DNA of 64,000 nucleotides, from NCBI GenBank assembly GCA_047495785.1, contig JBLDXI010000004.1, positions 2,542,001 to 2,606,000 of the forward strand. Direction: 5' to 3'. The notes under the pieces are model-generated. The model had not been told where the DNA came from and searched no databases. It worked only from the letters and a program-made list of their open reading frames with translations. The position numbers were made by a program, and so were the translations under genes. Source of the DNA: Lepidodermella squamata (Eukaryota > Animalia > Gastrotricha). This document shows, one piece after another, positions 2,210-64,000 of the stretch. The first letter of the stretch is position 1; every line of letters starts with the position of its first letter.

Positions 2210-5182
2210 ATGTTTTTTCTGCTCGCTTTTGTGAGCTCTCTCATAACCCCGGCGCAATTTGCCTGCCCGGCGCCTTCCTGCACAATAACACGTAAGATCA
2301 AAATAGCCAAGAGAAAAGGTATTAAAGTTATTTCTCTATTGTTCCTATCAGCGACTTGCCCTCCTGGTTACACTTACAATGCATGCTACGACAGTTGCTA
2401 CCTGTGGAGCACGTAAGTTTTTGTTCAAAGCGAAACACGTTTCAAGCAGCGTCGAAGATGGACCTTTCGCTGAGAGGGGGATAATGATTTTAGTTGAGGA
2501 ATCGTTGCAAATATCCGTATGAAAGAACACTGTCAACATCGAAGTCGATATCTATATCATATCACATAAGGTGGCTCGACTGTATCAAAAACAATTTGAG
2601 GCGTGTGGGAATCCAAAATTTAGTGGATGCGGAGGACCTAACGAAGGACAGAAATCGGTAGATGAATTTGATACTCATTCGCGTGGGATTTTGTATATTT
2701 GTCTCATTTATGGAAAATGATTTGGGTTTGACCAGGATCGATTACCTAGACTGCGGTCAATGTATCTAATTGCTGGAATAGCCTGCATGCTGATATGAAT
2801 GAATATAGTTACACGTTATATTCCTAGTCTGGGCTCAGTCTTTTGAAGGTTTTCGCATTTTGCATAATTTTTCCGACAAGCTTAATTTCCCACAGGAATA
2901 CTCTGTCTTATATGGCGGCTCTGCAGCAATGCATGGCAAACGGGGCTCATTTCTTTGTTCCAAACACTGAAGACGAATTCAAATATGTTGTGGGAATGGC
3001 TGATCGAACTGCCATGTACTGGTTCGGCCTGCAAGACTGGGCGTCACGCGGGGCTGGCAACAACGCCGGGCAATGGGTCTACGGCAACAACTACACAAAA
3101 GACCCAGATGGGAAGTGGTACTTCATGGACGAAACACCCACTTACATCACAACAGCGAATTTAGTAACCCAACCTAACTCGACCAGAATCGAGCCTGGTC
3201 CTTATAGCTGGTTACCTTGGGGTGCAAATGTCGCAACTGGCAATTTTCTCGCCGCATTAGCATACACTTCTTATTGGGGGTCTTACGCTTTTGTCAACTA
3301 TCAACTGACTATTAACTACATTTGCGAGGTCTCGAAAGTCTGCTCAACTTGCGCAGCTGGTTTCACGCGCTACCTATCCAATTGCTACTTGTATCGAAAT
3401 GACTCTTTAGACTACTACAGCGCGAGTGGGATATGCAGTGCGGCTAACTACGGAGCTGGTACGACCCTATGGACGCCCCGCCGCTGGCATTCGATCATTT
3501 TCGCGAGATTTCTAGCCGTGGCTGTTGGTTGGCCTCTAACAATAGGGCTAACTTCATTGGATCCGCCTTATTCCTGGAAATGGGCTGATAACGTAACTGT
3601 CTCGTTGTCTGATAATTTCGATATTCCGCCATTCACAATTCGATATGGCACGTATGTCGATACAGTGATTCGAATAGTGCCTGATACCAATTTAGCGAGT
3701 TTATCGGCTGTGTATGACGGTTTTTCGAATTTGACCTCGGGCTGGCGGGGCATTAATTCGGCAGAATTGCCGAACTGGACGAATCGATATGTTTGCCAAC
3801 AACCTGCTACATCAAGACTAGCGCAAACAACTCTAGCACCAACTACATCAACGGAATCAACAACAGTGACGACCACTACTTCTGCAAGCTCATCAACGGC
3901 ATCATCTACAGAGGGAATCACTACTACTGCAAGCTCATCGACAGCATCAACAACAGCGACGACCACTTCTACTGCGACTACTACGACAGCATCAACAGCA
4001 GCGACTACTTCAACTACGACAGCTGCGTCAGATTCTTCATCCACATGCACAACAACTTCTAAGAACACTGAAAGTTCTTCGACCACGTTATCAACCACTT
4101 CAAGCTCTTTGGCAACCGCAACTTCTTCGGTAACTACGCGGGCTACGTCGGACTCATCGTCCATGCCTACTACAACGGCTACAGCAATGACCAGTTCATA
4201 CAAGACTTTAGTGACTTCGCAGCTATCGACGACGGCTGCGAGTCGGGGCTATTGTGGCGATGCAATTTTGCAAGAGAGCCTCAACGAGGAGTGCGATGAT
4301 GGGAATACAGTATCGAACGATGGATGTGACCCTGATTGTAAATTCGAAGGTGAGGTATTTTAAGAATTCTTTTGAAAATTGGGAAATGAAAAATGGGACT
4401 CTAAAAATATGGGTGAAAAACCATATTCCTTGGGGCATTTGGCCTTGTATTATCAAGAATAAATTATTATCAAATTTAACTAAAGCACTTGAAGCAAAGC
4501 TGGATATCTATTTCACGATCGATTGCTCCCGCTCGCTCCACATGACGCACCTTCCAGCACTCAGTGGTCTTTTGAAGATTCTTACGAAACAAATTGTTCT
4601 CGTTGCCAGGTCAACGCAGGTTTGTATCATTGTCGTGTTAAAAAATTGTAGGCTATGATGCAATGACAGCTTGGAGTTATCGTTTTTGGTGGCCGCGTCT
4701 CGGGCATACGAGCTGTGACTCTTGCGAAAGGCAGCTCATTATTCGCAGACTCCATTTCAATTGATTCATTCTACAGTAAACTCCCCTACTTTGAAGGCCC
4801 TGGAAATGTCTCGAATGCGCTCAACAGACTTATGGATCCAGCAATTTTCAGTCCGGATGGTCGGTTGATTTTACTTCTCCATTTCAAACCAAATTGTAAT
4901 TTTGTTTCAGATGGATCACGATTAGATGCAACATCAGTTGCCGTAATTTTCACCACATCCCCGAGCTCTGACGTTTCAGCCTTAAAGAGTCAATTGAGTT
5001 ACCTAGCGTCGGCAAAGCGGCACGTAATTTTGGTTCAATTGAGAGAGAACTTGGAGCTCGATAAACAGGCAGCGAAATTCACTGCTCACGGGTTCTCCGT
5101 TATCAAAGTTAAAAATTGGAATCACTTGATGGCCTATGCTCCAGCCATACTGCATGAACTTCAAAATATTGCCCAAATGTGA
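2210..5182 (+). CDS. Gene A: secreted SP-CTLD-CTLD-mucin-MyxoCys-vWA protein; exons 2210-2291, 2352-2412, 2896-4349, 4486-4619, 4670-4859, 4911-5182
   Basis: GT-AG joins keep the frame. Hydrophobic signal peptide; CTLD motifs CPPGY..SCY..A.QQC..YWFGL..YICE and C..GF..NCY..IGL..WKWAD..YVCQ; S/T-rich stalk; [19 protein letters not shown]; vWA LDIYFTIDCSRS. Confidence 0.85.
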
Positions 5183-6221: not shown

Positions 6222-6236
6222 CAGCGTGGGATAATG
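6222..6236 (+). promoter_or_regulatory. Cluster-conserved upstream motif CAGCGTGGGATAATG (gene B)
   Basis: Exact copy upstream of ATG 6298. Confidence 0.6.
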
Positions 6237-6297
6237 AACAGCGTCATCCCAACAGAGCCCCGAATCATCAGAGTCACAATTTAGCGACAATTGTTCT

Positions 6298-8456
6298 ATG
6301 ATGGTTATCCTCCTTATTTTTGTGAGCTCATTTTTGACTCTAGCAGAGTCTGCTTGTCGAGCATCTTCTCCCACAATGACGGCGCTAGCAATATCTTTGT
6401 TTACTACTTGGACTATAGTTACTTCGCAGAATACAACGGGACTACTAACATCAACGTTGGCTGGTGGCTATTGTGGAGATGGCATTGTGCAGGCCAATCT
6501 CAACGAGGAGTGTGATGATGGGAATACGGTACCGAATGATGGATGCGATTCGGCTTGTAAGTTTGAAGGTAAGGGCGAAACAATTCGTTCTCATTCACTG
6601 CTACTTTGTTTGCATTGAATAGCCTCATGTGGAAACTGCACTAGTCCAAACCAGCAATGCCTGCCGAACAACACGTGTACTTGCATGGCTCCTTCGCAGC
6701 AATCGTGCCAGCCGCCCAGCAACTGCAGCATTCTGGTGATTCGGCCTGTTTTTCAAATCGCAGGCTGTAACGCTCTTTGCCAGCAAAATGACTACGCATT
6801 TAGCTATCCCGAACCCGATCCGGAACTGAACCAAGACTTCCAGTGGAGGAGGATAAGCGGCCTGACAGGAAATTGTACTTCTTTCGAATCGGTCAGCAGG
6901 CCGAACTATGTCTTACGTCACTCCAACTTCAGGCTCTTTCTCACTTGGAACAATGGAGATCAGTGGCTCGCTCTTGATGCGACGTTCTGCGAAAGGCCTC
7001 GAGTATCTGGGGTTAGCTACGAGGCTGTAAACTTCCCTGGGTTTTTCATCCATGTCGATGCGAACAACGAAATTTACCTTCGTCAGAATGATTTTTCACC
7101 AGATTTCGCGTCTCGTTCAACTTTTTATGAAACAGCTGCTGGTAGGTTGATAGAGCGTTTTCATTTATATCTTGTTTGACCTCCTCAACTACAGAACGGG
7201 CCACAACCACTGCAAGCACCTCAACTTCAGTGACTACTACAAATTCGGTGACTACAACAGTTTCCTCGACTCTCACATCAACTACAACAGCGGAAACAAC
7301 GACTAGTTCTTCGATTACTGCAAGCTCGCCTACAACGGTGACTACGTCAAACACGGTAACTACGGAAGCTACGCCAGTTACTTCGACTACTTCCACTACA
7401 ACAACATCCGCAACAGCAAGCAGTACTTCGGATTTGACTACTTCCAAGAGTACAACGGAACAATCGACGACAACGATTGCCGTGAGCTATTGTGGAGATG
7501 GGATAGTGCAAGCAAATCTTAACGAGGAGTGTGATGATGGGAATACGGTATCGAATGATGGATGCGATTCGGCTTGCAAATTTGAAGGTAAGAGCCAGAT
7601 TCCCAGGAAGTCTAAATTGAATACCTTGTTGAAGAAAAACCCATGTTGTAAACCTGCAGCACATGCGAGCTGCACAGCTTCATAATACCCTGCCCAGTAT
7701 CTATGGAGTTACTAAAACGATTTTTTTCAATATTTTAGCACTGAATGCGAAGCTAGATATCTATTTTGCGATCGACTGTTCCCGTTCAATTCCCATGACG
7801 CACCTTCCAGCACTCAATAGCTTTTTAACAGTTCTTACGAAGCAAATTATTCTTTTTGCCGCATCGACACAGGTATGTGCCATGCCAATAAAAATGGGAC
7901 TTCGACCTTAAATCATGAACATATTTGAGCAGCTTGGAGTATTTCTGTTTGGTGGCCGTGTTGTCGGCGGACACATCCTCACTCTAGCAGATGGCAGCTT
8001 ACAGTTCAAAGACTCAGTTTCGATTGGTTCTTTATACAAAAAACTGACATACTTCGAAGGCCCGGGAAACGTCTCTAATGCGCTAAACAGACTTATGGAT
8101 CCGGCGTTTTTTAGTTCAAAAGGTCGGTTAATTCTGGGGAATTTGACAACTATATTTTCCTAACTTTATTTTCAGATGGATATCGGATTGATGCTGAAGC
8201 AGTTGCTGTGATTTTCACCGCAACCCCGAGCTCTGACCTTTCAGCCTTAGAGAGTCAATTAAGTTACCTGGCGTCGGCAAAGCGGCACGTAATTTTGGTT
8301 CAATTGCCGTCTGCCTACAAACATCAGAATTTAGAGCTCGATAAACAAGCAGCAAGAATTACTGCTCATGGCTTCTCAGTCATCAAAATTGAGAACTGGA
8401 AAAACTTGATGGCGTATGCTCCAGCGATATTACACGAACTTCAAACAATTACGTAA
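6298..8456 (+). CDS. Gene B: secreted SP-MyxoCys-Cys linker-AbfB/CBM42-like-mucin-MyxoCys-vWA; exons 6298-6568, 6623-7141, 7195-7587, 7739-7872, 7933-8122, 8176-8456
   Basis: Frame-preserving GT-AG joins. AbfB-like [26 protein letters not shown]...DATF...[15 protein letters not shown]; vWA DCSRS. Confidence 0.85.
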
Positions 8457-15530: not shown

Positions 15531-18500
15531 ATGATTTTCCTCCTCATTATTTTGTTGAGCTGCCTCATAAAATCAGCCGAATTAGCTTGCCCAGCATCTT
15601 CTTGCACCATAACGCGTAAGATTAATCGATCAATATGAATACTGTTTTACCGAACTTCAAATGCAGCGACTTGCCCTCCTGGTTACACTTACAATGCATG
15701 CTACGACAGTTGCTACATGTGGAGCTCGTAAGTTCGACTCATTAACACTTTAACTGCCAAAAAGTTTCTGCGAGATCCGATATTTAGATCCAAATCCTGG
15801 GTCTGCCCAAAGTCCTTTTTTCGGGTCAAAGATGCGCCGTAAGGCAAAATGGCAGAGTGTAGGCCCTGACCCAGCGGTTCTTTTGACACCAAATTGGGAG
15901 CCAAAGATCAAGGAACGCACAGAAATCAACTTGCAAAAACGGTGAAATGTCGATTGTTGCGCCATAATCTGGGTCTAAAAATTAGGTCCAATTCTTGGGT
16001 CTGCTTTTTGGCTCTAATCCAAAATTTCAACGCTTTTTCACTGTCATTTTCAAAGACCTGCTCAGACCTTCAGTACCCAAATTCGGTGTCAAAAGAACCG
16101 CTGGGTCATGGCCTACACTTTGCCATTTTGCCTTACGGCGCATCTTTGACCCGAAAAAAGGACTTTGGGCAGACCCAGGATTTGGATCTAAATATCGGAT
16201 CTCGCAGAGTATTTTTGGCAGTTAATGTGTTAAAATACTATCAACTGTTAAAATACTTAGTGCCAAACCCTTCCACATGCATTTCTGAACAATTCCTCTA
16301 ACTTATTACCACTATTAAACCACTATTAAACCTATTTATACAGGGACGCAAAGTTTTATATGGCAGCTCTACAGCAATGCATGGCAAACGGGGCTCATTT
16401 CTTCGTTCCAAATACCGAAGACGAATTCGACTATGTTATGGGAATAGCAAATCAAAGTGTCGCGTACTGGTTCGGACTTCAAGACTGGGCGTCACGCGGG
16501 GCTGGCAACAACGCTGGGCCATGGGTCTACGGCAACAACTACACCAAAGACCCAGATGGGAAGTGGTACTTCATGGACGAAACACCTAATTTCATAACAG
16601 CGTCAAATTTGGTACTTCAACCTAACTCGACCCTAATCGAGCCGGGACCTTACAGCTGGTTACCTTGGGGTAACTATGTCGGAACTGACACCTATGTTGC
16701 CGCGCTTGCTTATTCGTCTTTTTGGGGAGCCTACTCTTTCAACACCTATCAACTGCCTCTTAACTACATTTGCGAGGTATCGAAAGTCTGCTCTACTTGC
16801 GGAACTGGCTTCACTCGCTACCTATCAAACTGTTACTTGTACCGAAACGACTCGCTGGACTACTACGGCGCGAGTGGGGTATGTAGAGCGGCTAACTACG
16901 GAGCTGGTACGACCCTTTGGACGCCTCGCCGCTGGCATTCTATCATTTTCGCGAGATTTCTAGCAGCTGCTGTTGGTTGGCCTCTAACAATTGGGCTTAC
17001 ATCGATAGACCCGCCTTATTCTTGGCAATGGGCTGATAACGTAGCTGTTTCGTTATCTGATAATTTCGACATTCCGCCTTATACGATTCGATATGGAATG
17101 TATATAGATTCTGTGATTCGAATTGTTCATCCTGATTCGGATATAGCGAATTTATCGACAATTTATCAAGGTTTTTCGAATTTGACGTCGGGCTGGCGGG
17201 GCATTAATTCGGCGGAGTGGCAGAATTGGACGAATCGATATGTTTGCCAACAACCGGCTACATCGAGACTAGCCCCAACTACATCAACGTCATCTACGAC
17301 AGAGACACCCACGACTACTTCAAGCTCTTCAATAACAGAGACTACTTCACTTACGGTAACTACGGAAGCTTCGTCAACCGGATTATCGACCTCGGCTGTG
17401 AGTGGTGGCTGTGAGTTTGCTTATCTTTCATGTTCAGTTTGATTCAGGACAAATGCTGAAATAGCAGCCCAGCCTCATAAATAAAAATGATCAATCCCGG
17501 GAAAGAAAAATCCCACAAATTTATGGGTAGCCATTATTTTGTAATGTTCAGCCTTTTCATAACCCTAAAATTGGGTGTTACACTGATACACTGATACACT
17601 GATTTATTGTTGCAATTTGTCTCGCGACGTTTAGCAATTAAAAAGGGTCGAGGCGCCTCACCACCGTGTTGGGCTTCTATTGAAAATCTTAATTGAAATT
17701 ATAATTTCTCCAAGCCATGGAAAACAGTGCGCGAATTAAAGGAACCTCGAACTGAGGGGCATTTTCAGGCTGAAACTTTAAGACTCAGGGGTGCCTCTCC
17801 CTGTTGTTTTTCCCACCTTGGGGAATGAACGTCAACTTGTGACAATACTCTCACTCATTGATACTTTGTTTCTATTGAACAGTTTCCTGTGCCAACTGCA
17901 CTAGTCCAAACCAGCAATGCCTGCCGAACAACACTTGTACTTGCGTTGCCCTTTCGCAGTCGTGCCAGCCGCCAAGCAATTGCAGCATTCTGGTGATTCG
18001 GCCTGTTTTTCAAATCGCAGGCTGTAACGCTCTTTGCCAGCAAAATGACTACGCATTTAGCTATCCCGAACCCGATCCGGAACTGAACCAAGACTTCCAG
18101 TGGAGGAGGATAAGCGGCCTGACAGGAAATTGTACTTCTTTCGAATCGGTCAGCAGGCCGAACTATGTCTTACGTCACTCCAACTTCAGGCTCTTTCTCA
18201 CTTGGAACAATGGAGATCAGTGGCTCGCTTTGGATGCGACGTTCTGCGAGAGGCCACTAGTTTCCGGGGTTGGCTACGAAGCTGTCAATTTTCCCGGGTT
18301 TTTCATTCACGTCGATGCAAACAACGAAATTTTTATTCGCCAGAATGATTCTTCGCCAGACTTCGAATCTCGTTCAACCTTCTATGAGTCCTCTTTGGGT
18401 AGGATTCGTGATTTTGTACCATCCCATGCTGATTGATGTCTTTCACTACAGATACGTTTACGGCCACCACAAGTTCCTCAACAGCAGCAACTAGTGCTTC

Positions 18501-20319
18501 AAGTTCAGTAACTGCACAAGCTTCGTCAGAACCCTCGACAATCACTGCTTCAGCTACAACAGAAGCAGCAGGGTTAAGTTCGTCGACTCTAGCGACGTTG
18601 CAAGGTACAACAGAGCTACTGACTACAACTTTTCCGTCCACGCCGGAACCCTCTACTGTATCTAGTGAAAGACCTACATCCGCCTCAAGTTCATCAACAA
18701 CAGTGACCTCAGCGACTATGGGAGCCACGTCAGATTCTACTCTTACTTCAACTTCAACAGCAGCAACTTTGAGTATAGTGGCTTCACAGAATACAACGCC
18801 ATCAACTACGACAATCGCTGTGAACTACTGTGGAGATGGCATAGCTCAGGCAAATCTCAACGAGGAGTGTGATGATGGGAATACGCTGTCAAATGATGGA
18901 TGCGACTCGGCTTGCAAATATGAAGGTAGCAGGATTTATGTTTTACGAAATGTTGAAATCGCTATATTTCCTACCCTCAATGCGTGGCTCAAGTGCCATT
19001 TTTTAGCAGCCAGGCTGCGAAGTATAGAGGTGCTAGGGTGTCGCGACATCTCAGCTTCAAGATGCCAACCAATGGGTCCCCAGACTATCGGCCTGGTCTT
19101 CGGAGTAAGACTAAGACCAGACCAAGGCCGGGTCAAATTTTCGGTCTTCGGTCTTCCCAAGACCAGAGAGGAAATTTCGGCCTGTCTATGGTCTTTGGTC
19201 TTGGTTTAAAGACCTGGCTACAATTTCGGTCTGAGTCTTGGCCTTACTCTAGGGCAAAAAGGTCTGGTCTGGCAAGACCAGGAAAAAATGACAGACCGAT
19301 AGTCTGTGGCTCCCCTTGAAGGTTTTCAAGGCCTAGAACTGAAAAAGCTCTCCAACTTAGAATCCTAATTCTGTAGATAATGGTTACCTATCCATCAAAT
19401 TTTTCTCTGCCTACTTCGCACGCCGTATGCAGCCCTCTTCATGATCCCATGAAGAGGTTCGAAGGCGATTTATCATGTCTAGATATACTTTTTTTTACCT
19501 TTGCTATCCGATTGACAATGGCCGTGGATTCTCGATTCTAAAACAATACTAATTTTTCGATTGCGATGTTGTGAATTTTCTCAGTGCTGACTACCAAGCT
19601 GGATGTCTATTTTGCGATCGATTGTTCTCGTTCGATTTCCATGACGAACCTGCCAGCCCTAAATGGCCTTTTAAAAGTTCTTACAGAACAACTTGTTCTC
19701 GTTTCCACTTCGATACAGGTATACCGCTTAGTAGATCACAGACAAACCATAAAATCACAGACAAACCATACTTGTAAATAATTCAGCTTCGTGGAGTACT
19801 AATTTTTGGTGGTCGAGTAGCTGGAATACGTGTCGCGACTCTAGCAAAGGGCACCTCGCAATTGACAGACTCGAGTTCAATTGATTCTTTGTACAGCAAG
19901 CTCACTTACTTCGCAGGCCCTGGAAATGCCTCGAATGCGCTCAGCAGACTTATGGATCCGGCGATTTTCAGCTCAAAAGGTCAGTTAATTCATTTCAGTT
20001 AATTCCTGTAAGACTAATAAAAAACGTAAATTGTTTAGATGGATCTCGGTTAGATGCAATATCAGTTGCCGTAATTTTTACGGCATCCCCAAGCTTCGAC
20101 GTCTCAGCTATGGAAGAACAATTAAGCTACTTGGCGTCCGCAAACCGGCGTTTAATTTTGGTTCAGTTGCCGGCTAGCTACAAAAATCAGAATTCAGAGT
20201 TAGATAAACAAGGAGGAAGATTCACTGCGCATGGCTTCTCTGTCATCAAAATTGAGAACTGGACAAAAACGATGGCCTATGCTCCAGCTATATTACACGA
20301 ACTTCAAATAATTACGTGA
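15531..20319 (+). CDS. Gene C: chimeric SP-CTLD-CTLD-mucin-AbfB-mucin-MyxoCys-vWA; exons 15531-15615, 15667-15727, 16344-17410, 17883-18398, 18452-18925, 19585-19718, 19787-19979, 20039-20319
   Basis: Frame-preserving GT-AG joins. The CTLD exon ends at GGCT|GTGAGT and joins the AbfB exon in phase 1. No signal exon lies between 17410 and 17883. Confidence 0.75.
15746..16229. mobile_element. piggyBac-like MITE in intron 2 of gene C
   Basis: ~150-bp near-perfect terminal inverted repeats (CAC(T/A)TTAACTGCCAAAAA...) flanked by TTAA on both sides. Confidence 0.85.
19081..19306. mobile_element. hAT-like MITE in an intron of gene C
   Basis: TIR CAGACTATCGG / CCGATAGTCTG; 8-bp TSD TGGGTCCC / TGGCTCCC (1 mismatch); internal AGACC/GGTCT repeats. 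Confidence 0.75.
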
Positions 20320-21377: not shown

Positions 21378-24300
21378 ATGTTTTTTTCGATGATTGTCTC
21401 CGTCCTTTGTTGTTTGGTGGGCTCTCTCATAGCAGTTACAGGCTCTGACTATCAAGCATCTTCTTGCACAATAATGACGATAACCGCAGTAGCAACAATA
21501 GTTCCATGGACTAGAGTGATTTCGCAGACTACTACGATTGGTGGCTATTGTGGAGATGGAATACTTCAAGCAAATCTCAACGAGGACTGTGATGATGGGA
21601 ATACAGTATCGAATGATGGTTGCGATTCAGCTTGCAAGCTTGAAGGTAGGGGCGGGCGGCAAGGTTTCCAGTAGAGGTCATGCTAAATCCCAGTCGAAAA
21701 AAAGTAGACCGTGGCTGGATCTAAATTTGACACTGGGATAGATCGTATGGGTTAGACCCTACGTAGATCGAATGGTAAAATTAGGACCTACACAGGATCG
21801 ATGCCCGTAGATCCAGTCTAATAGATCGACAATAAGTCAGAAAAAGAGCAATGTTGGACGAATATTATTTCTTTTGGATCTACCTGCGATCTACTGAGCT
21901 CTCGGTCTACTGATTTTCGTCTGGGAATTCCGAAATTCAAGGAATTTCCGTTAGAAAGTGAAAAATGTGTATTGGCAAATTGATTAGTTATTGTAGAATC
22001 TTCCATCCATTGAGAGCCCTAGAACTTTTTTATTTGAGGAATTCATTAGAAACTGGCTTTTTTGAATGATGAACGTCGATATCTTATTATATCATACTTT
22101 GTTTGTATTGAACAGCCTCCTGTGCCAGCTGCACTAGTCCCAACCAGCAATGCGTGAACAACACTTGTACGTGCGTGGCTCCTTCGCAGCAATCGTGCCA
22201 ACCGCCTAGCAATTGCGTTTCCGTGATTCGGCCAATTTTTCAGATCGCAGGCTGCAACGCTCTTTGCCGCCAGCAAAACGACTTGGCATACAGCTATCCC
22301 GAGCCAGATCCTGAACTTAATCAAGACTTCCAGTGGATAAAGACAATCGGCCTAACTGGCGATTGCATTTCCTTCGAATCTGTGACGAGACCGAATTATT
22401 TCCTACGTCAATTCGATTATAGGCTCCAGATATCAGAAAACCTAGTAGATGATTATATGTTGCCATACGATGCGACTTTCTGCGAATGGCCTTGGAGTTC
22501 AGGCGTTGGCTATTACTCTGTGACCTATCCCGGGTTTTTCATATACGTGGATGTGAACAACGAAATGTTCATTCGCGAGGATGACGGTTCGCCAGAATTC
22601 CATATTTACGCGTCCTTTTCTGAAACATTAGTTGGTGAGATTTCCCATTAGACTTTGAAATATTCACTTTGTTATCGACCTCTTCGATCACAGAACCGCG
22701 TACAACTACTACAAGGACTACAACAACAGTGACTACCACGGCAACCGCAGGAGCTACGTCCGGTTCCTCTTCGAATCCCACTACAACTTCTGTAGCCACA
22801 AGTACTTCGACTATGGTGATTTCACAGGAAACAACAGAGGTATCGACCACAACAACTGCACTAACAGCGATAAGTAGTTCAACCAGTGCAAGCCCCTCGA
22901 CAACAGTGACTACTTCAACTACGCCAACTCAGCTATCGACGACGGCTGTGAGTGGTGTCTGTGAGTTTGTTTACTTTGTTCCACGGCTGAGCAGAACGCA
23001 TTCAATGTGTGACAAATTATCCAGCATTTTAAAATCAATTCTCTCAGCCATAGAGAGCTTTCAGATATTTTTGTAGCACTCTAACCATTTAATGGGTGAA
23101 TTATTCACCTGTGGGCTAAAACACGTGTGACACAGTTTGAAAGGTAGGTTTTAGGGGGCGTACAAAAATCGGTTTCCACGGTTATATGGAGCCATAGTGC
23201 AAAATAAGCAAAAAGTGGTCAATACGGCTCTTCGCCTAGCTCAGCGTATCCCAAACGGTGTCCTAATAGGACACTCGTGAACTTTACTGAACTCTACCTA
23301 CTATGCTCCGTAGAGAACTTAGTGATAAAAAAAACACTTCCTATTTCGTATTGGTAACGAATTAATTTCAAATACCGAGTAAAAAGTCCATCATAAAGAT
23401 GCTGATAGATTATTATTTTTCAATTTTCACGCACTCCGTTCTCTATGAGCAAATCAGTGAGGTGAAAATCGCAAATTTCACGCGAAAATCTCTGTGCACG
23501 AATAAAGGTGGATTTTTCATTTCACAAAATCTTGGTGTTCAAAGTTGTACTCCGCTGTTCAAAGTTGTACTTTTGGGGTACCCCTTGCCAAATCCTTACG
23601 CATGCGAATTTCCGAGAATAAAAAATATCAGGATGTTACGTAAGGCGGCCCCTATCGAACAACGTTGAGAACCCGACCATAATCGTATCTGTTGAATTAC
23701 ACAGCATATTGAAGTTTGCATGGAAGTAGGTGTTCAAAGTTGTACCAGATTACGGTATACTGAAAAACCTCTGATTAAGAGACGGATTATAGTTGATACA
23801 ATAAATTTTAAAAACTGACTTCATCCATGCCCCTTGCTATTTAAGCGCGCTTCAACAGTAGTTGATCCTACCTGGCAGAATGAAAAAATGGTTTCAAGTT
23901 TCGACGGATATCAAATCCCGAACGAAAATTCATAAATTATTTCCCTGGTCTTTTTTCCATTAATATGAAATACCCAAAAAATCCCTGAACAAATTCGGTA
24001 AAAATCCCTGAAAAATAACCAAAAAAAAACAATGCCCTGAACTTTGACCTCGAAAGCCTCTGAAATTTTTTGAGCTTTTGACTATTTTTTAGGGTTTTTT
24101 ACCGACATTGTTCAGGGATTTTTCGGATATTTCAACTTAATTAATGGCAAAAAGACCCGGAAAATAATGTATGAATTTGGTCCGGGATTTCATATTTAAT
24201 TATTCCAAATTATTCCAAATTCCGAACCTGTCTGCAAAAGAGTTTAAGCCGTTGACCTAAAATGGATGGTCGCGGTACTGACTGAAGTTGAATCGGCCCA

Positions 24301-26230
24301 AGTACTCACACTTTCTGATGTCTTTGTTTGTATTGAACAGCCTCATGTGCCAATTGCTCCAGTCCGAACCAGCAATGTCTGCCCAACAACACTTGTGTGT
24401 GCGTGGCTCCTTCAGAGCAATCGTGCCAGCCGCCTAGCAATTGCAGCTTCGTGGTGTTTCGGCCTGTTTTCCTGATCGCAGGATGCTATGCTATTCGACA
24501 CCAAAATAACTTTGCCTACATCTATCCTGAGCCAGATCCTGAACTGAATCAAGACTTCCAGTGGTTGAAGAGGAGTGGCCTGGCTGGCGATTGCGATTCT
24601 TTTGAATCGGTCAACATGCCCAATTATTTCCTACGTCACTACAGCTTTAGGCTCCAGCTGACGAACCAAGCTGATTCGATCAACCCATACGATGCGACAT
24701 TCTGCGAAAGATCTCAGGGATCGGGGATCGCCTATGAATCTGTCAACTTTCCCGGATATTTCATTTATGTCGATTCAAACGACGAAATCTTTGTTCGCCA
24801 GAATGACAATTCATCGGATTTCGCGTCTCGTTCAACCTTCCATTCAACAGGTTTAAGCAGGCTGTGTGAGATTTTAGTCTGAAATTGATTGTTTTCTTCC
24901 ACCACAGATACGTCTGCAACTACTACAAGCTCCTCTACAACAGTGACTACTTCAAATTCGGTAACTGCGAGAGCCTCGCCAGAACCCTTGACTTCAACTA
25001 CAACTGCAGTGGCAGCGATAAGTACTTCGACCATAGTGACGTCACAGGGTTCATCGGAACTATCGACAGTAACGATTACCACGCCTGAACCTTCGACTGT
25101 ATCCACGTCGACTACAACCGGAAAAGGAACGATAAGTACTTCGACCACTGCAAGCTCCCATACAGCAGTTACTACATCCACGCAGGCATCTCTTTCTACT
25201 TCCACTGCACACATATCATCAACGACGAGCAGTTCGTCGAGTTTAATGCCTACCCCCGAGCTATCTACCATAACGATTGGCACTAGCAAATGTGGAGATG
25301 CCATAGTGCAGGAGTATCTTAACGAGGAGTGTGATGACGGGAATACGTTATCGAATGATGGATGCGATCCGGCTTGCAAGTTTGAAGGTAAGAGCTAGCG
25401 GCTAGTGAAAGTACTATAGGGGACATACCATAGGCTAAGGGCTAAGGTACTAGGCTCTAGCTATGAATGAGTCAGCAATAGATTGACTCTGGTCGATGCT
25501 ACACTTTCAATTTTCAATTTTCCCAGAGCTGAATGCTAAGCTTGATATCTATTTTGCGATCGACTGTTCTCGCTCGATTTCTGTCACGCTCCTCCAAGCA
25601 CTCTATGGCTTTATAAAAGTGCTAACGAAACAAATTATTGTTGCCTCGTCGACACAGGTATGTGCCGACACTAAAATTTCAGACCATGACATAGCTCTAT
25701 TTAAGCAGCTTGGAATCCTCATTTTTGGCGACCGCGTCGCTGGGATACGTGTTCTGACTCTAAGGAAAGGGACCCTGCTGTTCACAGACCCGACTTCAAT
25801 TGATTCCTTCTACAGCAAACTCACTTACTTCGAAGGCCCAGGAAATGTCTCGAATGCGCTCAACAGGCTCATGGACCCGTCGATATTCAGCTCGAAAGGT
25901 CAGTTGAAGCTTATTTCTGCCAAATTAAAGCAAAAATTATATTCTTCAGATGGGTCACGGTTTGATGCACTATCCGTTGCTGTTATTTTCACCGCATCCC
26001 CGAGTTCTGACGTTTCAGCCCTTGAAGAGCAGTTGAGCTACCTAGTGTTGTCAAACCGTCGAATAATTTTGGTTCAATTGCCATCGAGTTACAAACACCA
26101 GAATTTAGAACTCGATAAACAGGCAGCTAGATTTACTGCGTATGGCTTTTCGGTCGTCAAAATCGAAAACTGGAAGAACTTGATCGCTAATGCTCCCGCT
26201 ATAATACACGAACTGCAAACTTTAACGTGA
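21378..26230 (+). CDS. Gene D: SP-MyxoCys-AbfB-mucin-AbfB-mucin-MyxoCys-vWA; exons 21378-21645, 22116-22634, 22694-22960, 24341-24850, 24908-25387, 25527-25657, 25709-25898, 25950-26230
   Basis: Two divergent AbfB-like exons, each bounded by phase-1 introns; all joins GT-AG and in frame. Confidence 0.75.
23909..24194. mobile_element. Foldback MITE in an intron of gene D
   Basis: ~110-bp imperfect inverted arms (AAATCCCGAACGAAAATTCATA..AATCCCTGAACAA vs TTGTTCAGGGATT..TATGAATTTGGTCCGGGATTT). Confidence 0.6.
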
Positions 26231-27279: not shown

Positions 27280-29615
27280 ATGCTGCTGCTTTTTGCTTTT
27301 GTGACATTTCTCATTTCACAAGCAGGCTCTCCTCGCCAATCACATTCTTGCGCAATTACAACAGTGGCAATAGTAACCATAGGTACTTGGACAATAGTGA
27401 CATCGCAGAATACAACGGAGCTATCGACTACAACGATTGTCGTGAGCAATTGTGGGGATGGCGTAGTCCAAGCCAATCTCAACGAGGAGTGTGATGACGG
27501 GAATACGGTATCGAATGATGGATGTGATTCGGCCTGCAAGTTTGAAGGTAAGGACCGGTTTTCGAGTAGTTCACGTTCATTTTTGAGTAAATAAACTGGT
27601 TTTTGTTTGAATTCACTTGGCAAATTTTGCAAATTATCCCTATCCCCTTTCATCCCTTTAAGATCCATGATCGCACACTGTTTGCTGATATTTTGTTTGT
27701 AATGAACAGTTTCCTGTTCCAACTGCAATAGTCCAAACCAGCAATGCCTGGCGAACAACACGTGTACTTGCATGGCTCCTTCGCAGCAATCGTGTCAGTC
27801 GCCCAACAACTGCAGTATTCTGGTGATTCGGCCTGTTTTCCAAATCGCAGGCTGCAACGCTCTATGCCAACAAAATAACTTCGCATACAGCAATCCTGAG
27901 CCAGATCCGGAACTGAACCAAGACTTTCAGTGGATGAAGGTAGATGGCCTGATCGGCGATTGCGTTTCTTTCGTATCCGTCAGCAAGCCTGGATATTTTC
28001 TACGTCACTCCAGCTATAGGCTCCAGCTATCCCTGAACCAAGCCAGTGATTGGATTCTCCCATACGATGCGACGTTCTGTGAAACGCCCCTGGGATCCGG
28101 GGTTGGATACCAGTCTTATAACTATCCGCGGTATTTCATTCATGTGGACGCGAACAACGACATTTTCATTCGCGAGGATGACGGTTCGCCAGATTTCGCG
28201 ATGCGTGCAACCTTTTATGAATACTTTGTGGGTAGGTAGCGTGAGATTCAATATTTCCGTATTAATCCTAAGCTACAGAAGCGACTACAACAACATCGAC
28301 ATTTTCGAACACGGTAACTGATTCCTCGTCTACTGCAACGTCAACCACAACCGCGATGCCAACGACCACTGCAAGCTCCCCTACCACAACAGAGACCACA
28401 TCTGTTTTAACTACTGGAATTTCTTCGGTTACACTATCTACTTCCACTACAACTACGTCACCAACGCCAAGCAGTACTTCGCGCTTTTGGACTTCGCAGG
28501 GTACAACTGAGCTATGGACTGTATCTCCCACTGGAGCTACGTCAGATCTATCAACTACAACAGCAATGATAAGTACATTGGCTACTGCAAGCAACTCTAT
28601 GGTGGCTACATCAATCCTAGTAACTACGAGAGCTACTCAGCTTACATTTTCAACCTCCCCAGCAACGACATCAGCAACGGCAAGTAGTACTTCGAGTATA
28701 TTGACTTCGCAGCCTACAACGGAACTATCGACCACGACAATTGCCGCGAGCTACTGTGGAGATGGCGTAGTCCAAGCAAATCTCAACGAAGAGTGTGATG
28801 ACGGGAATACGGTATCGAATGATGGATGCGATTCAGCTTGCAAATTTGAAGGTAGGGAAGTTATTGGATACGCAATTTGATTCATCTTCTTCAATATTTC
28901 TAGCACTGAACGCTAAGCTAGATATTTACTTTGCGATCGATTGCTCTCGTTCGATCCCGATGACACACCTTCCGGCACTCAGTGGTCTTTTAAAAGTCCT
29001 TACGAAACAAATTATTCTTATTGCCACTTCGACGCAGGTATGAAAAATACTGGTGAGATAACTGAGTATGATTATATAAATGTTCAAGCAGCTTGGGATA
29101 CTCATTTTTGGTGGTCGTGTTGTGGGTATACGGTTTCTGACTCCGACAGAAAGCAGCTTACAGTTTACAGACTCGGTTTTGATAGATTCATTCTATAGCA
29201 AACTCTTTTACTTTGTAGGCCGTGGGAATGTCTCAAATGCGCTCAACAGACTTATGGACCCGTTGATTTTCAGCTCAAAAGGTCGGTTAAAGCTTTCAAA
29301 AATCATGATAATTGATTACAAATTTCCTTCTCAGATGGATCCCGGTTAGATGCAATATCAGTTGCCGTCATTTTTACGGCATCCTCGAGTTCTGACGTTT
29401 CAGCTCTGGAAGAACAATTAAGCTACCTAGCATTGTCAAACCGTCGAATAATTTTGGTTCAATTGCCATCTAGCTACAAACACCAGAGTTTAGAACTCGA
29501 TAAACAAGCAGCAAGATTTGCGGCGTATGGCTTTTCGGTCATCAAAATCGAAAACTGGACTCACTTGATGGCCAGTGCTCCAGCTATAATACACGAACTT
29601 CAAACAATCACGTGA
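27280..29615 (+). CDS. Gene E: SP-MyxoCys-AbfB-mucin-MyxoCys-vWA; exons 27280-27547, 27710-28231, 28279-28851, 28904-29037, 29092-29281, 29335-29615
   Basis: Same intron positions and phases as gene B; AbfB-like GLIGDCVSFVSVSKPGYFLRHSSYRL..DATF. Confidence 0.85.
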
Positions 29616-46410: not shown

Positions 46411-46552
46411 TTATATCTTATATTATATTATCTTATATTATTATATAAATATCTCCAGTTAAATAAACTTTAACTAACCTTCCAGGACGCACGCTAACGT
46501 TCAGCAAAAATAAAAAGAATAACAGCACGAAATGAGTCAAAGTTTTCGCAAG

Positions 46553-60218: not shown

Positions 60219-63200
60219 ATGATGATTTTTCTTCTAATATGCGTGAACTATCTTATAACACAAGCATACGCTGCTTGCCGGGGATCTTCATGCACAACAG
60301 CGGCGATGGCAATAGTAGCGATAACCACTTGGACTATAGCGACTTCGCAGAACACAACAGTGCTATCGACCACAACGATTGCTGTAACTAGTGGCTACTG
60401 CGGAGATGGCATAGTACAGGCCAATCTCAACGAGGAATGTGATGATGGAAACATGGTATCGAACGATGGATGCAATTCGGCTTGCAAGTTGGAAGGTGAG
60501 GGCTAGTTTTCAAGTAGGTAACGCTACTTTCAAAATTGAAGAAAAACCGTTAACAATTGAAAAATGGCGTTGGGCAAAGTTTTACGCATGGTGAGATTTT
60601 AGAAGTGAACGAGACATCGATAGAAGCAAACGAAAAGGTCATCGAAAAGACGCGGTAAAAATTTTATAAAATCAAGGAGGAGGAGGATGGGAGCTTCTTA
60701 GGTGTATTCTGCTCTATATCAGCTAAAAAGGTCCTGTTTGTCGGCCCATTCCTAGTCACAGCGCTGCAGAAATAGGGATCTGCAGAGGGATTTCTTGTAC
60801 AGGTAATCGCTAGCCATGGAGAAATACAATTTTCCCCGATCTAGAACTCTGAGAGAGTTTGGCGTAAAAAATCCTACTATTCTTTATACTGTGTTTGTAT
60901 TTCAAAGTCTCCTGTGCCAACTGCACTAGTCCGAACCAGAAATGCCTGCCGAACAACACATGTACGTGCGTTGCTCCGTCGCAGCAAACATGCCAGCCGC
61001 CAAGCAATTGCAGCATTCTGGTGATTCGGCCTGTTTTTCAAATCCCAGGCTGCAACGCTCTTTGCCAGCAAAATGACTACGCATTTAGCTATCCCGAGCC
61101 AAATCCTGAACTGAACCAAGACTTCCAGTGGAGGAAGATAAGCGGCCTGACTGGCAATTGTACTTCATTTGAATCCATCAGCAGGCCGAACTATGTCCTA
61201 CGTCACTCCTACTTCAGGCTCTTTCTGACCTGGAACAATGGCGACCCGTGGCTCGCTTTGGATGCGACGTTTTGCAGAAGGTCACTAGTATCCGGGGTTA
61301 GATACGAGGCTGTAAACTTCCCTGGGTTTTTCATCCATGTCGATTCGAACAACGACATTTTCCTTCGTCAGGATGACTCTTCAGCGGATTTCGCGACGCG
61401 TTCAACTTTTTATGAAACATCGTTGGGTAGGTTGCGATTTTACAGCATTTCACGGTTTGATTGTTTTCTTCCACGACAGCAACGCCTATAACTACCACTA
61501 GCTCCTCGACAACAGTGAGTACTTCAACGACTGTTACCACGACACATTCACCGTCTATCCCACCATCAACTACGACTGTTACCACGACAGGTACGAGAAG
61601 TACTGTCTTTCGATAAAACAGTGGCTGACTTGTGCGCTAAACGCCAAGATGAAATGTTCACCAATATTTGGGCCGCGCGCTGATGTCAAAGAGCTGTTTT
61701 AAACTGTGCAAGGGTTTTTTTATACCAAATTCGTAAGATCAGCTTTCCCATTTCCCCTTCCGCTATGATAATTTCCGTCTTATGTCTTTTCCACTGGAAG
61801 CAAACTTGCCTAAGAACCCGCCACTTCACGCAACCATTCATTTTAGCTCCAAGATTTTGCGTACAAAACGTCACTGTGGATGGCGCGTTGTTAACCTAAT
61901 TCCCAGGTAATAAATATCTCCGATAAAGCTTTTTCACAGGATGATGCCATCCAACTTAAAATCCTGTGAAATGCCGTTTTTTTCAAAAATGACAATTTTT
62001 TATCAGAAGTCGCGGATTTGGTTCATCATCAATTTTTTCTCTCGAATCCCATTCAGGTGAATATTTGAGGAGAGTTTATCCCAGACTAGATCTATTGACT
62101 GATTGCATTGAATAATTCCTCATGGTTATGAAGTTGTTTGAAAAAGCGAGGCGAAAAAGCTTGCGCAAAATTTTTGAAACCCTATGTTACAAAAAATGTA
62201 ATGGATCGCAAGGAATAATGTTTCTCATAGCATAGTAACGATCGATTGACCAATCGGCTTGCGCAACAGAAGTGGACAGAGGGTTTCTATGCTGATGAGC
62301 TAAATTGTCGTCATTAACGATTAACGCTTTTTCGCATCAACCCTCAACGTTGTTTACTATATTACTCATACTCATTGCTAGTAATTTTCAGTGAAAGAAT
62401 ATCTTGACTTGAGCGCGTGTTCCACATTCTTCCAAAACAGAAACGCCTACAACTAATGCAAGTTCATCGACAACAGTGAGTACTTCAACGACTATAACTA
62501 CGACACATTCACCGTCTATGCCGACATCAACTACGACTGCAATAGCAACAATAAGTGCTTCGACTATTGTGGCCTCGCAGGAGTCGTCAACAACAACGAT
62601 TGGTTCTACAGAGGCTACGCCAGATTTTTCAAACACTCTCATATCAAATTCAACAACAGTGGCAGCAATAAGTAGTTCGACTTCGACTATAGTGAGTTCG
62701 CTGAGTACAGCATCGCTATCGACCACGACAATTGCTGTGAACTACTGTGGAGATGGCATAGTGCAGGCCGATCTCAACGAGGAGTGTGACGATGCGAATA
62801 CGCTATCGAATGATGGGTGCGATTCGGCTTGCAGGTTTGAAGGTAGAGATTTTGAGCATCTCCTTGAACTGAAGAAAAACGCACGGAACTGCGCTTGATA
62901 AAAGGTTTACTTTATTATTGTTCGATAACATTACCCATTCCAAATTTCCAAAAAGAGGGTTCAGAATCGTACAATGTCCTATCTCCAATAAGGTGGTTCA
63001 ATTTTCGCAGCCATCCCTATGACGTCAATATTAAGAAATAAGAAGGTTTTAAGGATATTAATCTGTTTGAATTTGTTCAGCACTGAACGCCAAGATGGAT
63101 ATCTATTTTGCGATCGACAGTTCTCGTTCGATTCCTATGACGCACATCCCAACACTGAATGGCCTTTTAAAAGTTCTTACGAAACAAATTATTCAAATTG

Positions 63201-64000
63201 CGCCATCAACACAGGTATGTGCCGTGCCTGTAAAAAATACTCACTGTGAACATGAAATTTGAGCAGCTTGGAGTACTCATGTTTGGCGGTCGTGTTGCTG
63301 GCAGACGCATCCTATCCTTAGCAGAAAGCAACATACAATTCACAGAGTCGATTTCGATTAGTTCTTTCTACGACAAACTAGCATACTTCAAAGGCCCAGG
63401 AAATGTCTCTAATGCGCTCAATAGGCTCAGAGACCCGGCGATTTTCAGCCCGGAAGGTCGGTTAATACCTTCCAAATTTCAAAAACAAAAACCATCAACT
63501 ATTTTTTCAGATGGATCACGGGTTGATGCAATAAAAGTTGTTGTCATTATAACCGCATCCCCAAGCTCTGACCTTTCAGCAGTGGAAGAACAATCATTGT
63601 GGAACCGCTGGTAAGTTGAACTTCGGCGCGCACGCTGATTGGTCAATTTATCGTTGCTAGTGACTCCGGAATGAAACAATTTAGTCGTGCGATCCACTAA
63701 TAAATTATTTTCTATTTATGCAAAAAATGACCTTGCCACACCCTCTGCACGGTTTCCATTGACCACGAGCGTAAACTCCATATTAATGGTGGTAAATTGC
63801 TGCGGCAAAAAACACTTGTTGAAAAAGATCTTATGGATCGCACGACCAACATGTTTCATCCGGGAGTCATAGCAACGATCGATTGACCAATCAGCGTGCG
63901 CATTGGATTGGACTTTTAAGTGGTCACACAATGATTGAGTTACGTAGCGTTGTCGAACCGGCGCATAATTTTGGTTCAATTACAGTCTAGCGACAAACAT
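60219..64000 (+). CDS. Gene H: SP-MyxoCys-AbfB-mucin-mucin-MyxoCys-vWA, last exon disrupted by a transposon and running off the window; exons 60219-60495, 60908-61426, 61480-61590, 62441-62842, 63081-63214, 63267-63456, 63511-
   Basis: Same architecture as genes B and E. EEQ|[10 protein letters not shown] is split by a 339-bp insertion, giving a TAA at 63612-63614. Confidence 0.7.
61872..62393. mobile_element. Probable CACTA/CMC-like element remnant in an intron of gene H
   Basis: CACTG...CAGTG ends; shares ATGGATCGCA and AACGATCGATTGACCAATC with the 63595 insertion. No TSD seen. Confidence 0.4.
63595..63933. mobile_element. CACTA/CMC-like MITE inserted in a vWA exon
   Basis: Ends CATTGTGGAACCGCT / AGTGGTCACACAATG; 2-bp TSD AT. 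Removing it restores CAA TTG AGT TAC (QLSY), as in the paralogues. Confidence 0.8.

Follow-up and report, generated by a model that had tools for sequence, protein, structure and literature searches.

AbfB (CBM42-type) exons as probable lectin cassettes in a tandem family of predicted secreted mucin-VWA genes of the gastrotrich Lepidodermella squamata

A stretch of 64,000 nucleotides from Lepidodermella squamata (GenBank assembly GCA_047495785.1, contig JBLDXI010000004.1, positions 2,542,001 to 2,606,000 of the forward strand), referred to here as the window, contains six exons that encode AbfB domains of the CBM42 type. These exons probably serve as functional cassettes in five tandem genes for secreted, glycan-recognising mucin-VWA proteins. 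The exons are under purifying selection. As judged from the gene models, the AbfB domain is a lectin-type domain and not the carbohydrate-binding module of an enzyme, because a glycoside-hydrolase domain was found in none of the models by Pfam scans and in the motif map. The absence of a catalytic partner had already been pointed out in an earlier note on this DNA, which was made from the letters alone.

Identification of the AbfB exons

When the window was searched with an AbfB exon using tblastn, six matches and no further ones were obtained, all on the plus strand (Table 1). The earlier note had placed AbfB/CBM42 exons at the same six starts, and the Pfam profile PF05270 (AbfB) agreed with it, matching all six exons with 46.9 to 69.6 bits (E 3.8e-12 to 3.8e-19) at a gathering cut-off of 22.8 bits. 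The alignments covered profile positions 32 or 33 to 135 in five copies and 13 to 136 in copy 24341 (copies are named by their first position), the match to the alpha subdomain being weak. The motifs SFES, LRH, DATF and NFPG were located in the exon translations. Just as the earlier note had read them, LRH...DATF is kept in the middle subdomain, with LRQ in copy 22116, and only copy 24341 has RH in the first subdomain.

All six exons are preceded by a pyrimidine-rich tract and an AG acceptor and end at a GT donor. Their lengths of 516 to 525 nt are each divisible by 3, the open reading frames are intact, and the AbfB domain is unbroken in every exon, so that the lack of an internal intron was also read correctly before. 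Because the reading frame begins one base ahead of the exon, all six exons are of phase 1-1. The first 35 residues or so of the exon form a distinct Cys-rich lead with 7 Cys and an EGF-like C-x-C spacing, for which no Pfam match was obtained. This lead is absent from the earlier account of the exons.

No close relative was present among 1.84 billion representative proteins. A word-index protein search with the exon gave no match; as the eligible proteins were 96 to 305 amino acids long, this result is little informative. The Atlas feature search with the exon returned AbfB clusters alone, at a sub-threshold score of 0.85. Contamination or an assembly artefact was rejected on the grounds of the introns, the six paralogues and the sequencing depth of the locus, which in a DNA run equalled that of the flanks; DNA contigs across positions 5900-9000 showed presence and even depth.

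Table 1. Positions of the AbfB exons, the genes carrying them and the C-type lectin-like sister genes in the window
Feature	Position	Strand	Evidence
G1: C-type lectin-like heads replacing AbfB, mucin-DUF4215-VWA chassis shared	2357..5182	+	motif map, DUF4215 E 5.8e-07
G2 exon 1: ATG, signal peptide, short Thr-rich stretch, DUF4215; end KFEG/gt, phase 1	6298..6568	+	Pfam DUF4215 E 6.3e-09, donor
AbfB exon of G2 (Cys-rich lead + CBM42 beta-trefoil)	6623..7141	+	Pfam E 1.2e-18, splice sites, AF2/Foldseek CBM42 fold
G2 exon 3: Ser/Thr-rich mucin stalk and second DUF4215, same phase-1 donor	7195..7587	+	Pfam DUF4215 E 2.6e-10
G2 C-terminal VWA-like domain (DCSRS), short introns inside, then stop	7741..8456	+	tblastn with G5 VWA unit
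G4, inferred model: CTLD-like head, mucin, AbfB, mucin, DUF4215, VWA	15672..20319	+	motif map, junction, VWA units
AbfB exon of G4	17883..18398	+	Pfam E 1.8e-17, splice sites
G5, inferred model: signal peptide, DUF4215, AbfB, mucin, AbfB, mucin, DUF4215, VWA	21378..26230	+	motif map, VWA units
First AbfB exon of G5, beta-pocket His to Gln	22116..22634	+	Pfam E 3.8e-12
Second AbfB exon of G5, sole copy with alpha-subdomain Arg-His	24341..24865	+	Pfam E 3.8e-19
G6: signal peptide, DUF4215, AbfB, mucin, DUF4215, VWA	27280..29615	+	motif map, VWA units
AbfB exon of G6	27710..28231	+	Pfam E 1.4e-18; alternative in-frame donor puts end at 28240
Paralogues similar to G1	36268-39045 and 40022-42613		motif map
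G11, extends past window end: signal peptide, DUF4215, AbfB, mucin, DUF4215, VWA	60219..64000	+	motif map, VWA units
AbfB exon of G11	60908..61426	+	Pfam E 1.5e-15

Gene architecture and tandem array

The array consists of about 11 paralogues in tandem. AbfB exons occur in five of them (G2, G4, G5, G6 and G11), and C-type lectin-like heads in at least four. The predicted order of the parts is signal peptide, DUF4215, Cys-rich lead with AbfB, Ser/Thr-rich mucin stalk, DUF4215 and C-terminal VWA. The description of the domains as stand-alone therefore had to be given up: AbfB is one cassette of a predicted secreted DUF4215/mucin/VWA protein. One giant gene was considered and rejected, as every unit has an ATG and signal peptide of its own, and its VWA is followed by a stop codon.

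DUF4215 (PF13948) was detected with 30.1 to 40.8 bits at a gathering cut-off of 27, and 13 instances of its motif CGDG...EECDDGN were counted in the window. The DUF4215 exons all terminate in EG followed by the gt of a phase-1 donor. In the mucin stalks of the paralogues Ser and Thr together account for 54 to 62% of the residues. The Pfam VWA profile matched the unit of G5 with 19.9 bits (E 9.5e-4), which is under its cut-off of 23.8, and no match was found for the VWA domain among the PDB sequences. The Atlas feature search gave exclusively VWA clusters at the top, with a score of 0.94, and a DCSRS motif (DxSxS, MIDAS type) is present in those copies whose VWA N-terminus is complete.

In the sister genes the AbfB domain is replaced by C-type lectin-like (CTLD) heads on the same chassis. 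The CTLD head gave a phmmer match to the Mincle CRD (E 3.8e-06); the Pfam Lectin_C profile reached 16.7 bits (E 0.013), under the cut-off of 22.6, and a word-index protein search with the head region gave no match. G4 probably carries C-type lectin-like domains upstream of AbfB, as the CTLD-mucin open reading frame located there offers a phase-1 donor at its end. Since AbfB and CTLD heads stand on a shared stalk and tail, the family appears to exchange its glycan-recognition heads. All junctions are of phase 1, so that insertion or duplication of the AbfB cassette would keep the reading frame; the cassette could be added to a gene or multiplied within it.

Selection on the copies

The pairwise dN/dS between the six copies ranged from 0.09 to 0.37 in all 15 pairs, at a dS of 0.3 to 1.1 and a protein divergence of 30 to 35%. 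The array also holds degenerate fragments, for example at 14727-15244, and a divergent unit at 48181, as would be expected if the tandem array were decaying and the AbfB copies were its unexpressed relics. Against this, all six exons are open, their splice sites are intact and the low dN/dS extends to every pair, which makes relics very unlikely.

Fold and sugar pockets

The AF2 model of the AbfB exon had a pLDDT of 85.6 overall and of more than 90 across the trefoil. It was calculated from a 137-row alignment of AbfB homologues; the six paralogues alone gave a poor model with a pLDDT of 45.6. The CBM42 fold proposed in the earlier note was borne out by Foldseek, for which the top 19 matches in the PDB were all CBM42, including 1WD3, 3AKH, 3KMV and 9NXH. 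TM-scores on the target were 0.82 to 0.88 for free-standing CBM42 modules, and the rmsd was mostly about 2 A.

Characterised CBM42s bind via their beta and gamma pockets. In the gastrotrich copies the beta-pocket triad consists of His100, Phe/Tyr103 and Asp119 (numbering of the exon at 6623); the aromatic residue and Asp are present in 6/6 copies and His in 5/6, copy 22116 having Gln in its place. The gamma-pocket Asp is replaced in all six copies, by Arg in five and by Tyr in one, and the gamma aromatic residue is gone from all of them. The alpha-pocket His is found only in copy 24341. The +3/+19 spacing of the beta triad is identical to that of residues H70, Y73 and D89, which form the pocket of the arabinose-bound CBM42 of AtAbf43C (PMC12493170). 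Sugar binding would thus depend on one pocket and would be weaker than in the characterised CBM42s. From the residues present, the AbfB head most likely holds one terminal furanoside-type sugar in the beta pocket, with arabinofuranose or galactofuranose, which is similar to it, as possible ligands on microbial, algal or matrix glycans.

Comparison with known AbfB proteins

The CBM42 modules of the GH54 and GH43 arabinofuranosidases (AkAbfB of A. kawachii, 1WD3; SaAraf43A of S. avermitilis, 3AKH; CBM42A of A. thermocellus, 3KMV/9NXH) share with the window copies the Pfam family, the beta-trefoil fold and the residues and spacing of the beta-pocket triad. The Cys pair around the beta subdomain of AkAbfB equals that of the window copies. 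In contrast to these modules, which show 22 to 27% identity, the window copies are without a catalytic domain, share a spliced animal exon with a Cys-rich lead to which they are fused, and have a destroyed gamma pocket throughout and a plausible alpha pocket in one copy only.

The best sequence matches were small bacterial proteins with a stand-alone AbfB domain, taken from metagenomes (P0045, P0072, P0077 and P0105), which are also neighbours of the window clade in the maximum-likelihood (ML) tree, in a grouping of weak support. The Cys pair and the alpha motif RHQN...D are common to both. Unlike the window genes, the bacterial genes have no introns, mucin stalk, DUF4215 or VWA. A search of bacterial genomes with P0077 alone matched its N-terminal part only, in a Gemmatimonadaceae MAG, and pointed to no donor.

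In animals, AbfB had been described by the earlier note as known mainly from otogelin-type proteins. This is incomplete, as secreted AbfB-repeat proteins exist in cnidarians (Hydra, LOC100199315 and others; Hydractinia; Clytia) and in a tunicate (Clavelina). Like the products predicted for the window genes, they are secreted animal proteins free of hydrolase domains, with a likely extracellular adhesive or matrix role. In Hydra the AbfB-only proteins are specific for the basal disc, whose cells secrete adhesive (PMC5080974). The cnidarian and tunicate proteins differ from the window copies in having 2 to 4 AbfB domains in tandem with intact beta and gamma pockets, and in lacking the alpha Arg-His, the Cys pair and the mucin, DUF4215 and VWA parts; they form a clade of their own in the ML tree, outside of which the window copies fall.

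An AbfB domain also characterises otogelin, a matrix protein of the mucin type (PMC4948705). Otogelin and otogelin-like, vertebrate relatives of the gel-forming mucins, have AbfB inside a secreted mucin-type protein of the extracellular matrix, a likeness drawn from their description and not from their AbfB sequence. The otogelin type is defined by VWD-C8-TIL units together with AbfB (PMC4948705), and otogelin has a cystine knot besides. The window genes have none of these: Pfam scans detected no VWD, C8 or TIL, and the exons of the gene models all belong to signal peptide, DUF4215, AbfB, mucin or VWA. The PPOD lectins of Hydra, which are tandem-expanded and secreted into the extracellular coat (PMC3531485), resemble the window proteins as an expanded, secreted family of beta-trefoil lectins; they belong to another beta-trefoil family (fascin/PPOD-like, not AbfB), and their ligands are sulfated glycans.

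Evolutionary origin

The earlier note had suggested that the module may derive from horizontal gene transfer (HGT). A quick tree of 211 rows, which gave the window clade no sister with support, was superseded by a careful ML tree of 97 rows and 141 alignment columns, calculated without the AbfB domains of otogelin and fungal GH54. In the latter tree the six copies lie outside the cnidarian and tunicate clade (clade support 99/95) and within a 15-row group which includes short bacterial AbfB proteins (support 84/87). An ancient transfer, with capture of a small bacterial (or fungal) AbfB gene that gained introns and was shuffled into secreted families, would agree with this topology and with the best single-domain BLAST/HMM matches, which are short AbfB proteins with 35 to 42% identity at about 80 bits, whose genes lie among bacterial ones (TrmO/NUDIX, a two-component system, Lon/HSP20, an ECF sigma factor). 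Several characters point the same way. Of the window copies 6/6 have the Cys pair C85-C123, of the animal-clade rows 0/27 and of the other rows 29/64, and fungal GH54 has it too; the alpha motif of copy 24341 equals the bacterial consensus; and a one-residue gamma insertion with loss of the Asp is common to the window copies and P0077. The lack of a close relative among the representative proteins also fits a transfer, for which the PPOD lectins provide a precedent, a bacterial transfer having been proposed for them as well (PMC3531485). However, placing the window copies with the animal clade was not rejected by the AU test (p 0.38). The stem branch, at 1.23, is long and the alignment short, the 84/87 support is not strong, and the otogelin and fungal domains are missing from the tree. 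The shared characters are possibly ancestral and not derived. Furthermore, the GC3 of 0.52 to 0.58 is that of adjacent animal genes, and the exons are flanked by spliceosomal introns and include an animal-type Cys-rich lead. A transfer is thus quite possible, at somewhat less than an even chance.

A vertical origin would derive the copies from an old animal AbfB stock (cnidarian, tunicate, otogelin) by fast divergence in a lineage-specific expansion. It is in line with the AbfB-only and AbfB-mosaic proteins of Hydra, Hydractinia, Clytia and Clavelina, with the occurrence of AbfB in a TSP1-rich protein of the 'coadhesin' type and in a protein combining AbfB with a C-type lectin, with the animal monophyly that the AU test allows, and with the host-like exon structure and composition. 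The ML topology, the best matches, the Cys pair and the alpha and gamma characters speak against it, favouring a place outside the cnidarian and tunicate clade, from which, moreover, the alpha Arg-His and Asp partly retained in the window copies are missing. This origin, too, must be taken seriously while falling a little short of an even probability. What stood of the earlier suggestion is that topology and several characters favour bacterial-type AbfB, and the source of the module may be said to lean that way; a common animal origin is allowed by the AU test. The complete sequence of events, from capture of a bacterial AbfB through a phase 1-1 cassette of Cys-rich lead and AbfB, exon-shuffled into secreted families, to a furanoside-recognising lectin arm, is rather doubtful. 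The transfer bears on origin alone and can be combined with the functional interpretation given below.

Discussion

The five tandem genes would give rise to secreted, heavily O-glycosylated proteins with one or two AbfB heads. The head would bind a furanoside-type sugar via the beta pocket, and the mucin stalk and VWA tail may tether or multimerise the protein. Its task would be extracellular, in mucus, in the cross-linking of adhesive or matrix, or in the agglutination of microbes, and not in signalling. Alternatively, the fold could have become a structural or protein-binding module that has lost its sugar. Degeneration has reached two of the three pockets in nearly every copy, copy 22116 is without the beta His as well, and the AbfB domain of otogelin likewise has no assigned function. 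Yet the beta Asp and aromatic residue have remained invariant, and His almost so, despite the protein divergence and a dS of up to about 1, and the paralogues replace AbfB by another lectin fold, which suggests that the position is one of glycan recognition. A structural or protein-binding module without sugar binding is accordingly considered unlikely. The arabinose sensor envisaged in the earlier note has in its favour that the beta pocket resembles the arabinofuranose-binding pockets of CBM42. However, none of the gene models contains a transmembrane segment, a kinase, a channel or another part for signalling, the C-terminus consists of the VWA followed by a stop codon, and AbfB does not stand alone. 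It is because of this lack of a signalling part that a lectin or adhesion role is preferred, and a sensor appears extremely unlikely.

AbfB/CBM42 domains have been studied almost solely as appendages of microbial arabinofuranosidases. The animal AbfB domains, those of otogelin and of the Hydra adhesive proteins, have been annotated but functionally little explored, and in the literature searched no animal AbfB domain with binding data was found. The locus described here presents AbfB as an apparently exchangeable lectin head that alternates with C-type lectin heads on one predicted secreted mucin-VWA scaffold, and it combines purifying selection with one conserved putative sugar pocket. In its degree of surprise the finding falls short of a new mechanism. 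It offers a compact, testable system for the ligands of animal AbfB domains, for how exon shuffling makes lectin repertoires, and for whether a microbial carbohydrate-binding module can be domesticated following transfer. To our knowledge, Araf and Galf are sugars not made by animals. If a bacterial AbfB was indeed captured, the gastrotrich would have gained a lectin arm for non-self sugars (furanosides), which may serve in adhesion or immunity.

AbfB exons and gene models

The AbfB pattern quoted in the earlier note was encoded by exactly six plus-strand stretches in a translation of the whole window (42.9% GC, 0 N), and tblastn of the window with the exon as query found no degenerate AbfB copies beyond these six. 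The exons are named here by their starts (6623, 17883, 22116, 24341, 27710 and 60908). All of them matched Pfam PF05270 (AbfB) with 46.9-69.6 bits (E 3.8e-12 to 3.8e-19; gathering score 22.8). On the 5' side of every exon a pyrimidine-rich tract was followed by AG, on the 3' side there was a GT donor, and the exon length of 516-525 nt was divisible by 3. As the reading frame starts one base upstream, the AbfB exons are symmetric phase 1-1 in six of six cases. In each exon a distinct Cys-rich lead occupies the first ~35 residues; it has seven Cys in EGF-like C-x-C spacing, and no Pfam match was found for it. Translation, tblastn, Pfam and splice sites thus confirmed the six exons, and the LRQ of copy 22116 and the restriction of the first-subdomain RH to copy 24341 were found as had been claimed.

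The domain had been described as stand-alone and lacking a catalytic partner. The catalytic partner is indeed absent, but the domain is not stand-alone, because the exon sits in a multi-exon DUF4215/mucin/VWA gene. From the predicted splice models we infer that the AbfB exons are parts of larger genes, as laid out in the table for gene G2, which contains exon 6623. The C-terminal domain was called VWA because of a weak Pfam VWA match (19.9 bits), the DCSRS sequence as its DxSxS-type motif, and an Atlas feature search with the VWA unit, in which every top cluster was VWA (score 0.94); no sequence match to this domain was found in the PDB. The uninterrupted VWA frame of gene G5, which contains exons 22116 and 24341, may reflect the loss of introns or their retention in frame.

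Features in the window and their positions
Feature	Position	Strand	Remarks
G2 exon 1	6298-6568	+	ATG, signal peptide, short Thr-rich stretch, DUF4215 Cys repeat (Pfam E 6.3e-09); ends ...KFEG|gt, phase 1
G2 exon 2	6623-7141	+	AbfB exon
G2 exon 3	7195-7587	+	Ser/Thr-rich stalk and second DUF4215 repeat (E 2.6e-10); same phase-1 donor as exon 1
G2 C-terminal part	7741-8453	+	VWA-like domain interrupted by short introns, then stop codon
G5 VWA unit	25487-26227		Single open frame, 247 codons; paralogues have one or two short introns in the same region
Paralogues with C-type lectin-like heads	2357-5182, 36268-39045, 40022-42613		Mucin-DUF4215-VWA chassis
Fragments of lectin-family units	9150, 14727-15244, 45878-46445, 47844-49039		Some units truncated or degenerate
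Altered mucin-exon ends	17390-17420, 22960-22990		Before AbfB exons 17883 and 24341; ...AVSG[GV]CEF, two GTGAGT donors
Kinase-domain gene	10370-13266	-	12-repeat ankyrin array; between lectin-family units
Cys-loop ligand-gated channel gene	44223-45455		Neur_chan_LBD E 1.3e-13; within the array, VWA-only unit next
Ankyrin and SOCS-box gene	49336-50454		Just upstream of arrestin-domain pair
Arrestin-domain gene	50677-51930	+	Convergent with the following gene, tail-to-tail
Arrestin-domain gene	52813-54176	-	Convergent with the preceding gene, tail-to-tail

Tandem family and exchange of heads

A motif map and tblastn with the VWA unit revealed about eleven paralogous units on the plus strand, degenerate fragments among them. 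A single tandem "head-swap" lectin family makes up most of the 64-kb window. Five units carried AbfB, one of them (G5) with two AbfB exons, and at least four carried C-type lectin-like heads on the same chassis of mucin stalk (54-62% Ser+Thr), DUF4215 and VWA. The C-type lectin-like heads matched the Mincle CRD (phmmer E 3.8e-06), with a Pfam match below the cut-off. AbfB exon 17883 was located downstream of a C-type lectin-like ORF ending in a usable phase-1 donor. A common ...EG|gt phase-1 donor was present at all 12 DUF4215 exon ends checked, so the AbfB cassette could be inserted, duplicated or omitted without a change of frame. Judged by these predicted exon boundaries, the modular gain and loss of the cassette is classic exon shuffling.

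At the altered end shared by the mucin exons before 17883 and 24341, other copies continue into DUF4215; the junction resembles a scar left by unequal crossover, through which the AbfB cassette came to lie behind the mucin stalk. P0219, a eukaryotic protein of 350 aa from a 1262-base JGI contig, has both AbfB and a canonical C-type lectin domain (Pfam E 2.4e-20), the same pairing as inferred for G4, the gene with exon 17883. The arrestin-domain genes listed in the table look like an inverted duplication.

Fold and sugar pockets

AF2 gave a pLDDT of 45.6 with the six paralogues alone and of 85.6 with a 137-row AbfB-domain alignment, exceeding 90 across the trefoil. The best 19 Foldseek matches in the PDB were all CBM42 (GH54 AkAbfB, SaAraf43A and A. 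thermocellus CBM42), with TM-scores on target of 0.82-0.88 against free-standing CBM42 modules. Together with the Pfam scores above the gathering score, these matches support the AbfB domain call.

In the arabinose-bound CBM42 of AtAbf43C, H70, Y73 and D89 contact the sugar in the beta pocket, the gamma pocket relies on the corresponding residues, and the alpha pocket does not function (PMC12493170). The window copies have the beta-pocket triad His100, Phe/Tyr103 and Asp119 in the same spacing, with Asp and the aromatic residue in all six copies and His in five. The gamma-pocket Asp is replaced by Arg in five copies and by Tyr in one, the aromatic residue is gone, and one residue is inserted. 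Arg-His of the alpha pocket occurs in copy 24341 only, while the alpha Asp (D72) is invariant. From this residue pattern at most one pocket per AbfB head looks competent, possibly two in copy 24341.

Origin and maintenance of the AbfB domain

In a set of 1.84 billion representative proteins, a profile of the six copies had 1407 matches at E <= 1e-3, none of them a close relative of the window copies. The best single-domain scores were ~80 bits at 35-42% identity, and the best matches were short AbfB proteins from metagenomic contigs with plainly bacterial neighbours (TrmO, NUDIX, two-component system, Lon, HSP20, ECF sigma factor). AbfB-repeat proteins without hydrolase were present in Clavelina, Clytia, Hydra and Hydractinia, and a TSP1-rich "coadhesin"-type protein with AbfB was apparently animal. 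P0077 is an AbfB protein on a bacterial contig (L004:5001-6065); a Gemmatimonadaceae MAG matched its first 80 residues.

The earlier note had proposed horizontal transfer as a possible origin. In an ML tree of 97 rows and 141 columns, otogelin and GH54 domains not being among the rows, the window copies were monophyletic (100/100), with a long stem branch of 1.23. Another clade united the named domains of cnidarians and tunicates and also took in some metagenomic sequences without names (99/95, or 94/90 including Clytia); the window clade fell outside it and grouped with bacterial-context proteins (84/87). Three characters agree with this placement: the Cys pair C85-C123 (6/6 window copies, 0/27 animal-clade rows, 29/64 other rows; also in fungal AkAbfB), the RHQN...D motif in the alpha subdomain of copy 24341, which matches the bacterial consensus, and the gamma insertion with Asp loss common to the window copies and P0077. 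These shared characters could, however, be ancestral, and vertical descent is consistent with the AU test (delta lnL 3.9, p 0.38), which did not reject a tree with the window copies in the animal clade. Transfer and vertical descent are therefore about equally likely. A transfer, if there was one, would be old and fully domesticated.

Pairwise dN/dS was 0.09-0.37 for all 15 pairs of AbfB copies at dS 0.3-1.1, indicating old duplicates that are kept by purifying selection. In the AbfB exons GC3 was 0.52-0.58, inside the range of the neighbouring animal genes (0.38-0.65). A public DNA run, probably of the source sample, contained 95% of the sampled locus words, and its contigs tiled 5900-9000 without any difference and as deeply as the flanks; jointly with the introns and the paralogy, and only in this combination, this coverage rules out a foreign contaminant. 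Among RNA runs, none was found to contain the locus.

Possible function

The proposed role as an arabinose "sensor" was not supported, since the gene models contain no membrane span or signalling domain. The lectin heads, the presumably O-glycosylated stalk, the VWA tail and the exchange of heads with C-type lectins point instead to a protein predicted to be secreted and to act in glycan recognition or adhesion. Judged by the conserved beta pocket, its putative ligand is a terminal furanoside. Arabinofuranose is the known CBM42 ligand, and galactofuranose would be a candidate because of its similar shape and microbial distribution. Multivalency would have to arise from two heads, as in G5, or from VWA-mediated assembly.

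Precedents fitting a secreted adhesion or matrix protein are otogelin, a matrix protein of the mucin type with AbfB as its defining domain (PMC4948705), and two AbfB-only Hydra proteins found specifically in the basal disc, the site of the adhesive-secreting cells; the latter were taken for glycosyl hydrolases, possibly for detachment (PMC5080974). The Hydra AbfB proteins compared here, which are not the two accessions of that study, consist of AbfB lectin-type domains only, without a catalytic domain. The PPOD beta-trefoil lectins of the Hydra cuticle, for which a bacterial origin has been proposed, are a precedent for the use of such a lectin fold in an extracellular coat (PMC3531485). AbfB itself is a known domain family; what is new is the architecture, with AbfB heads on a mucin-DUF4215-VWA chassis.
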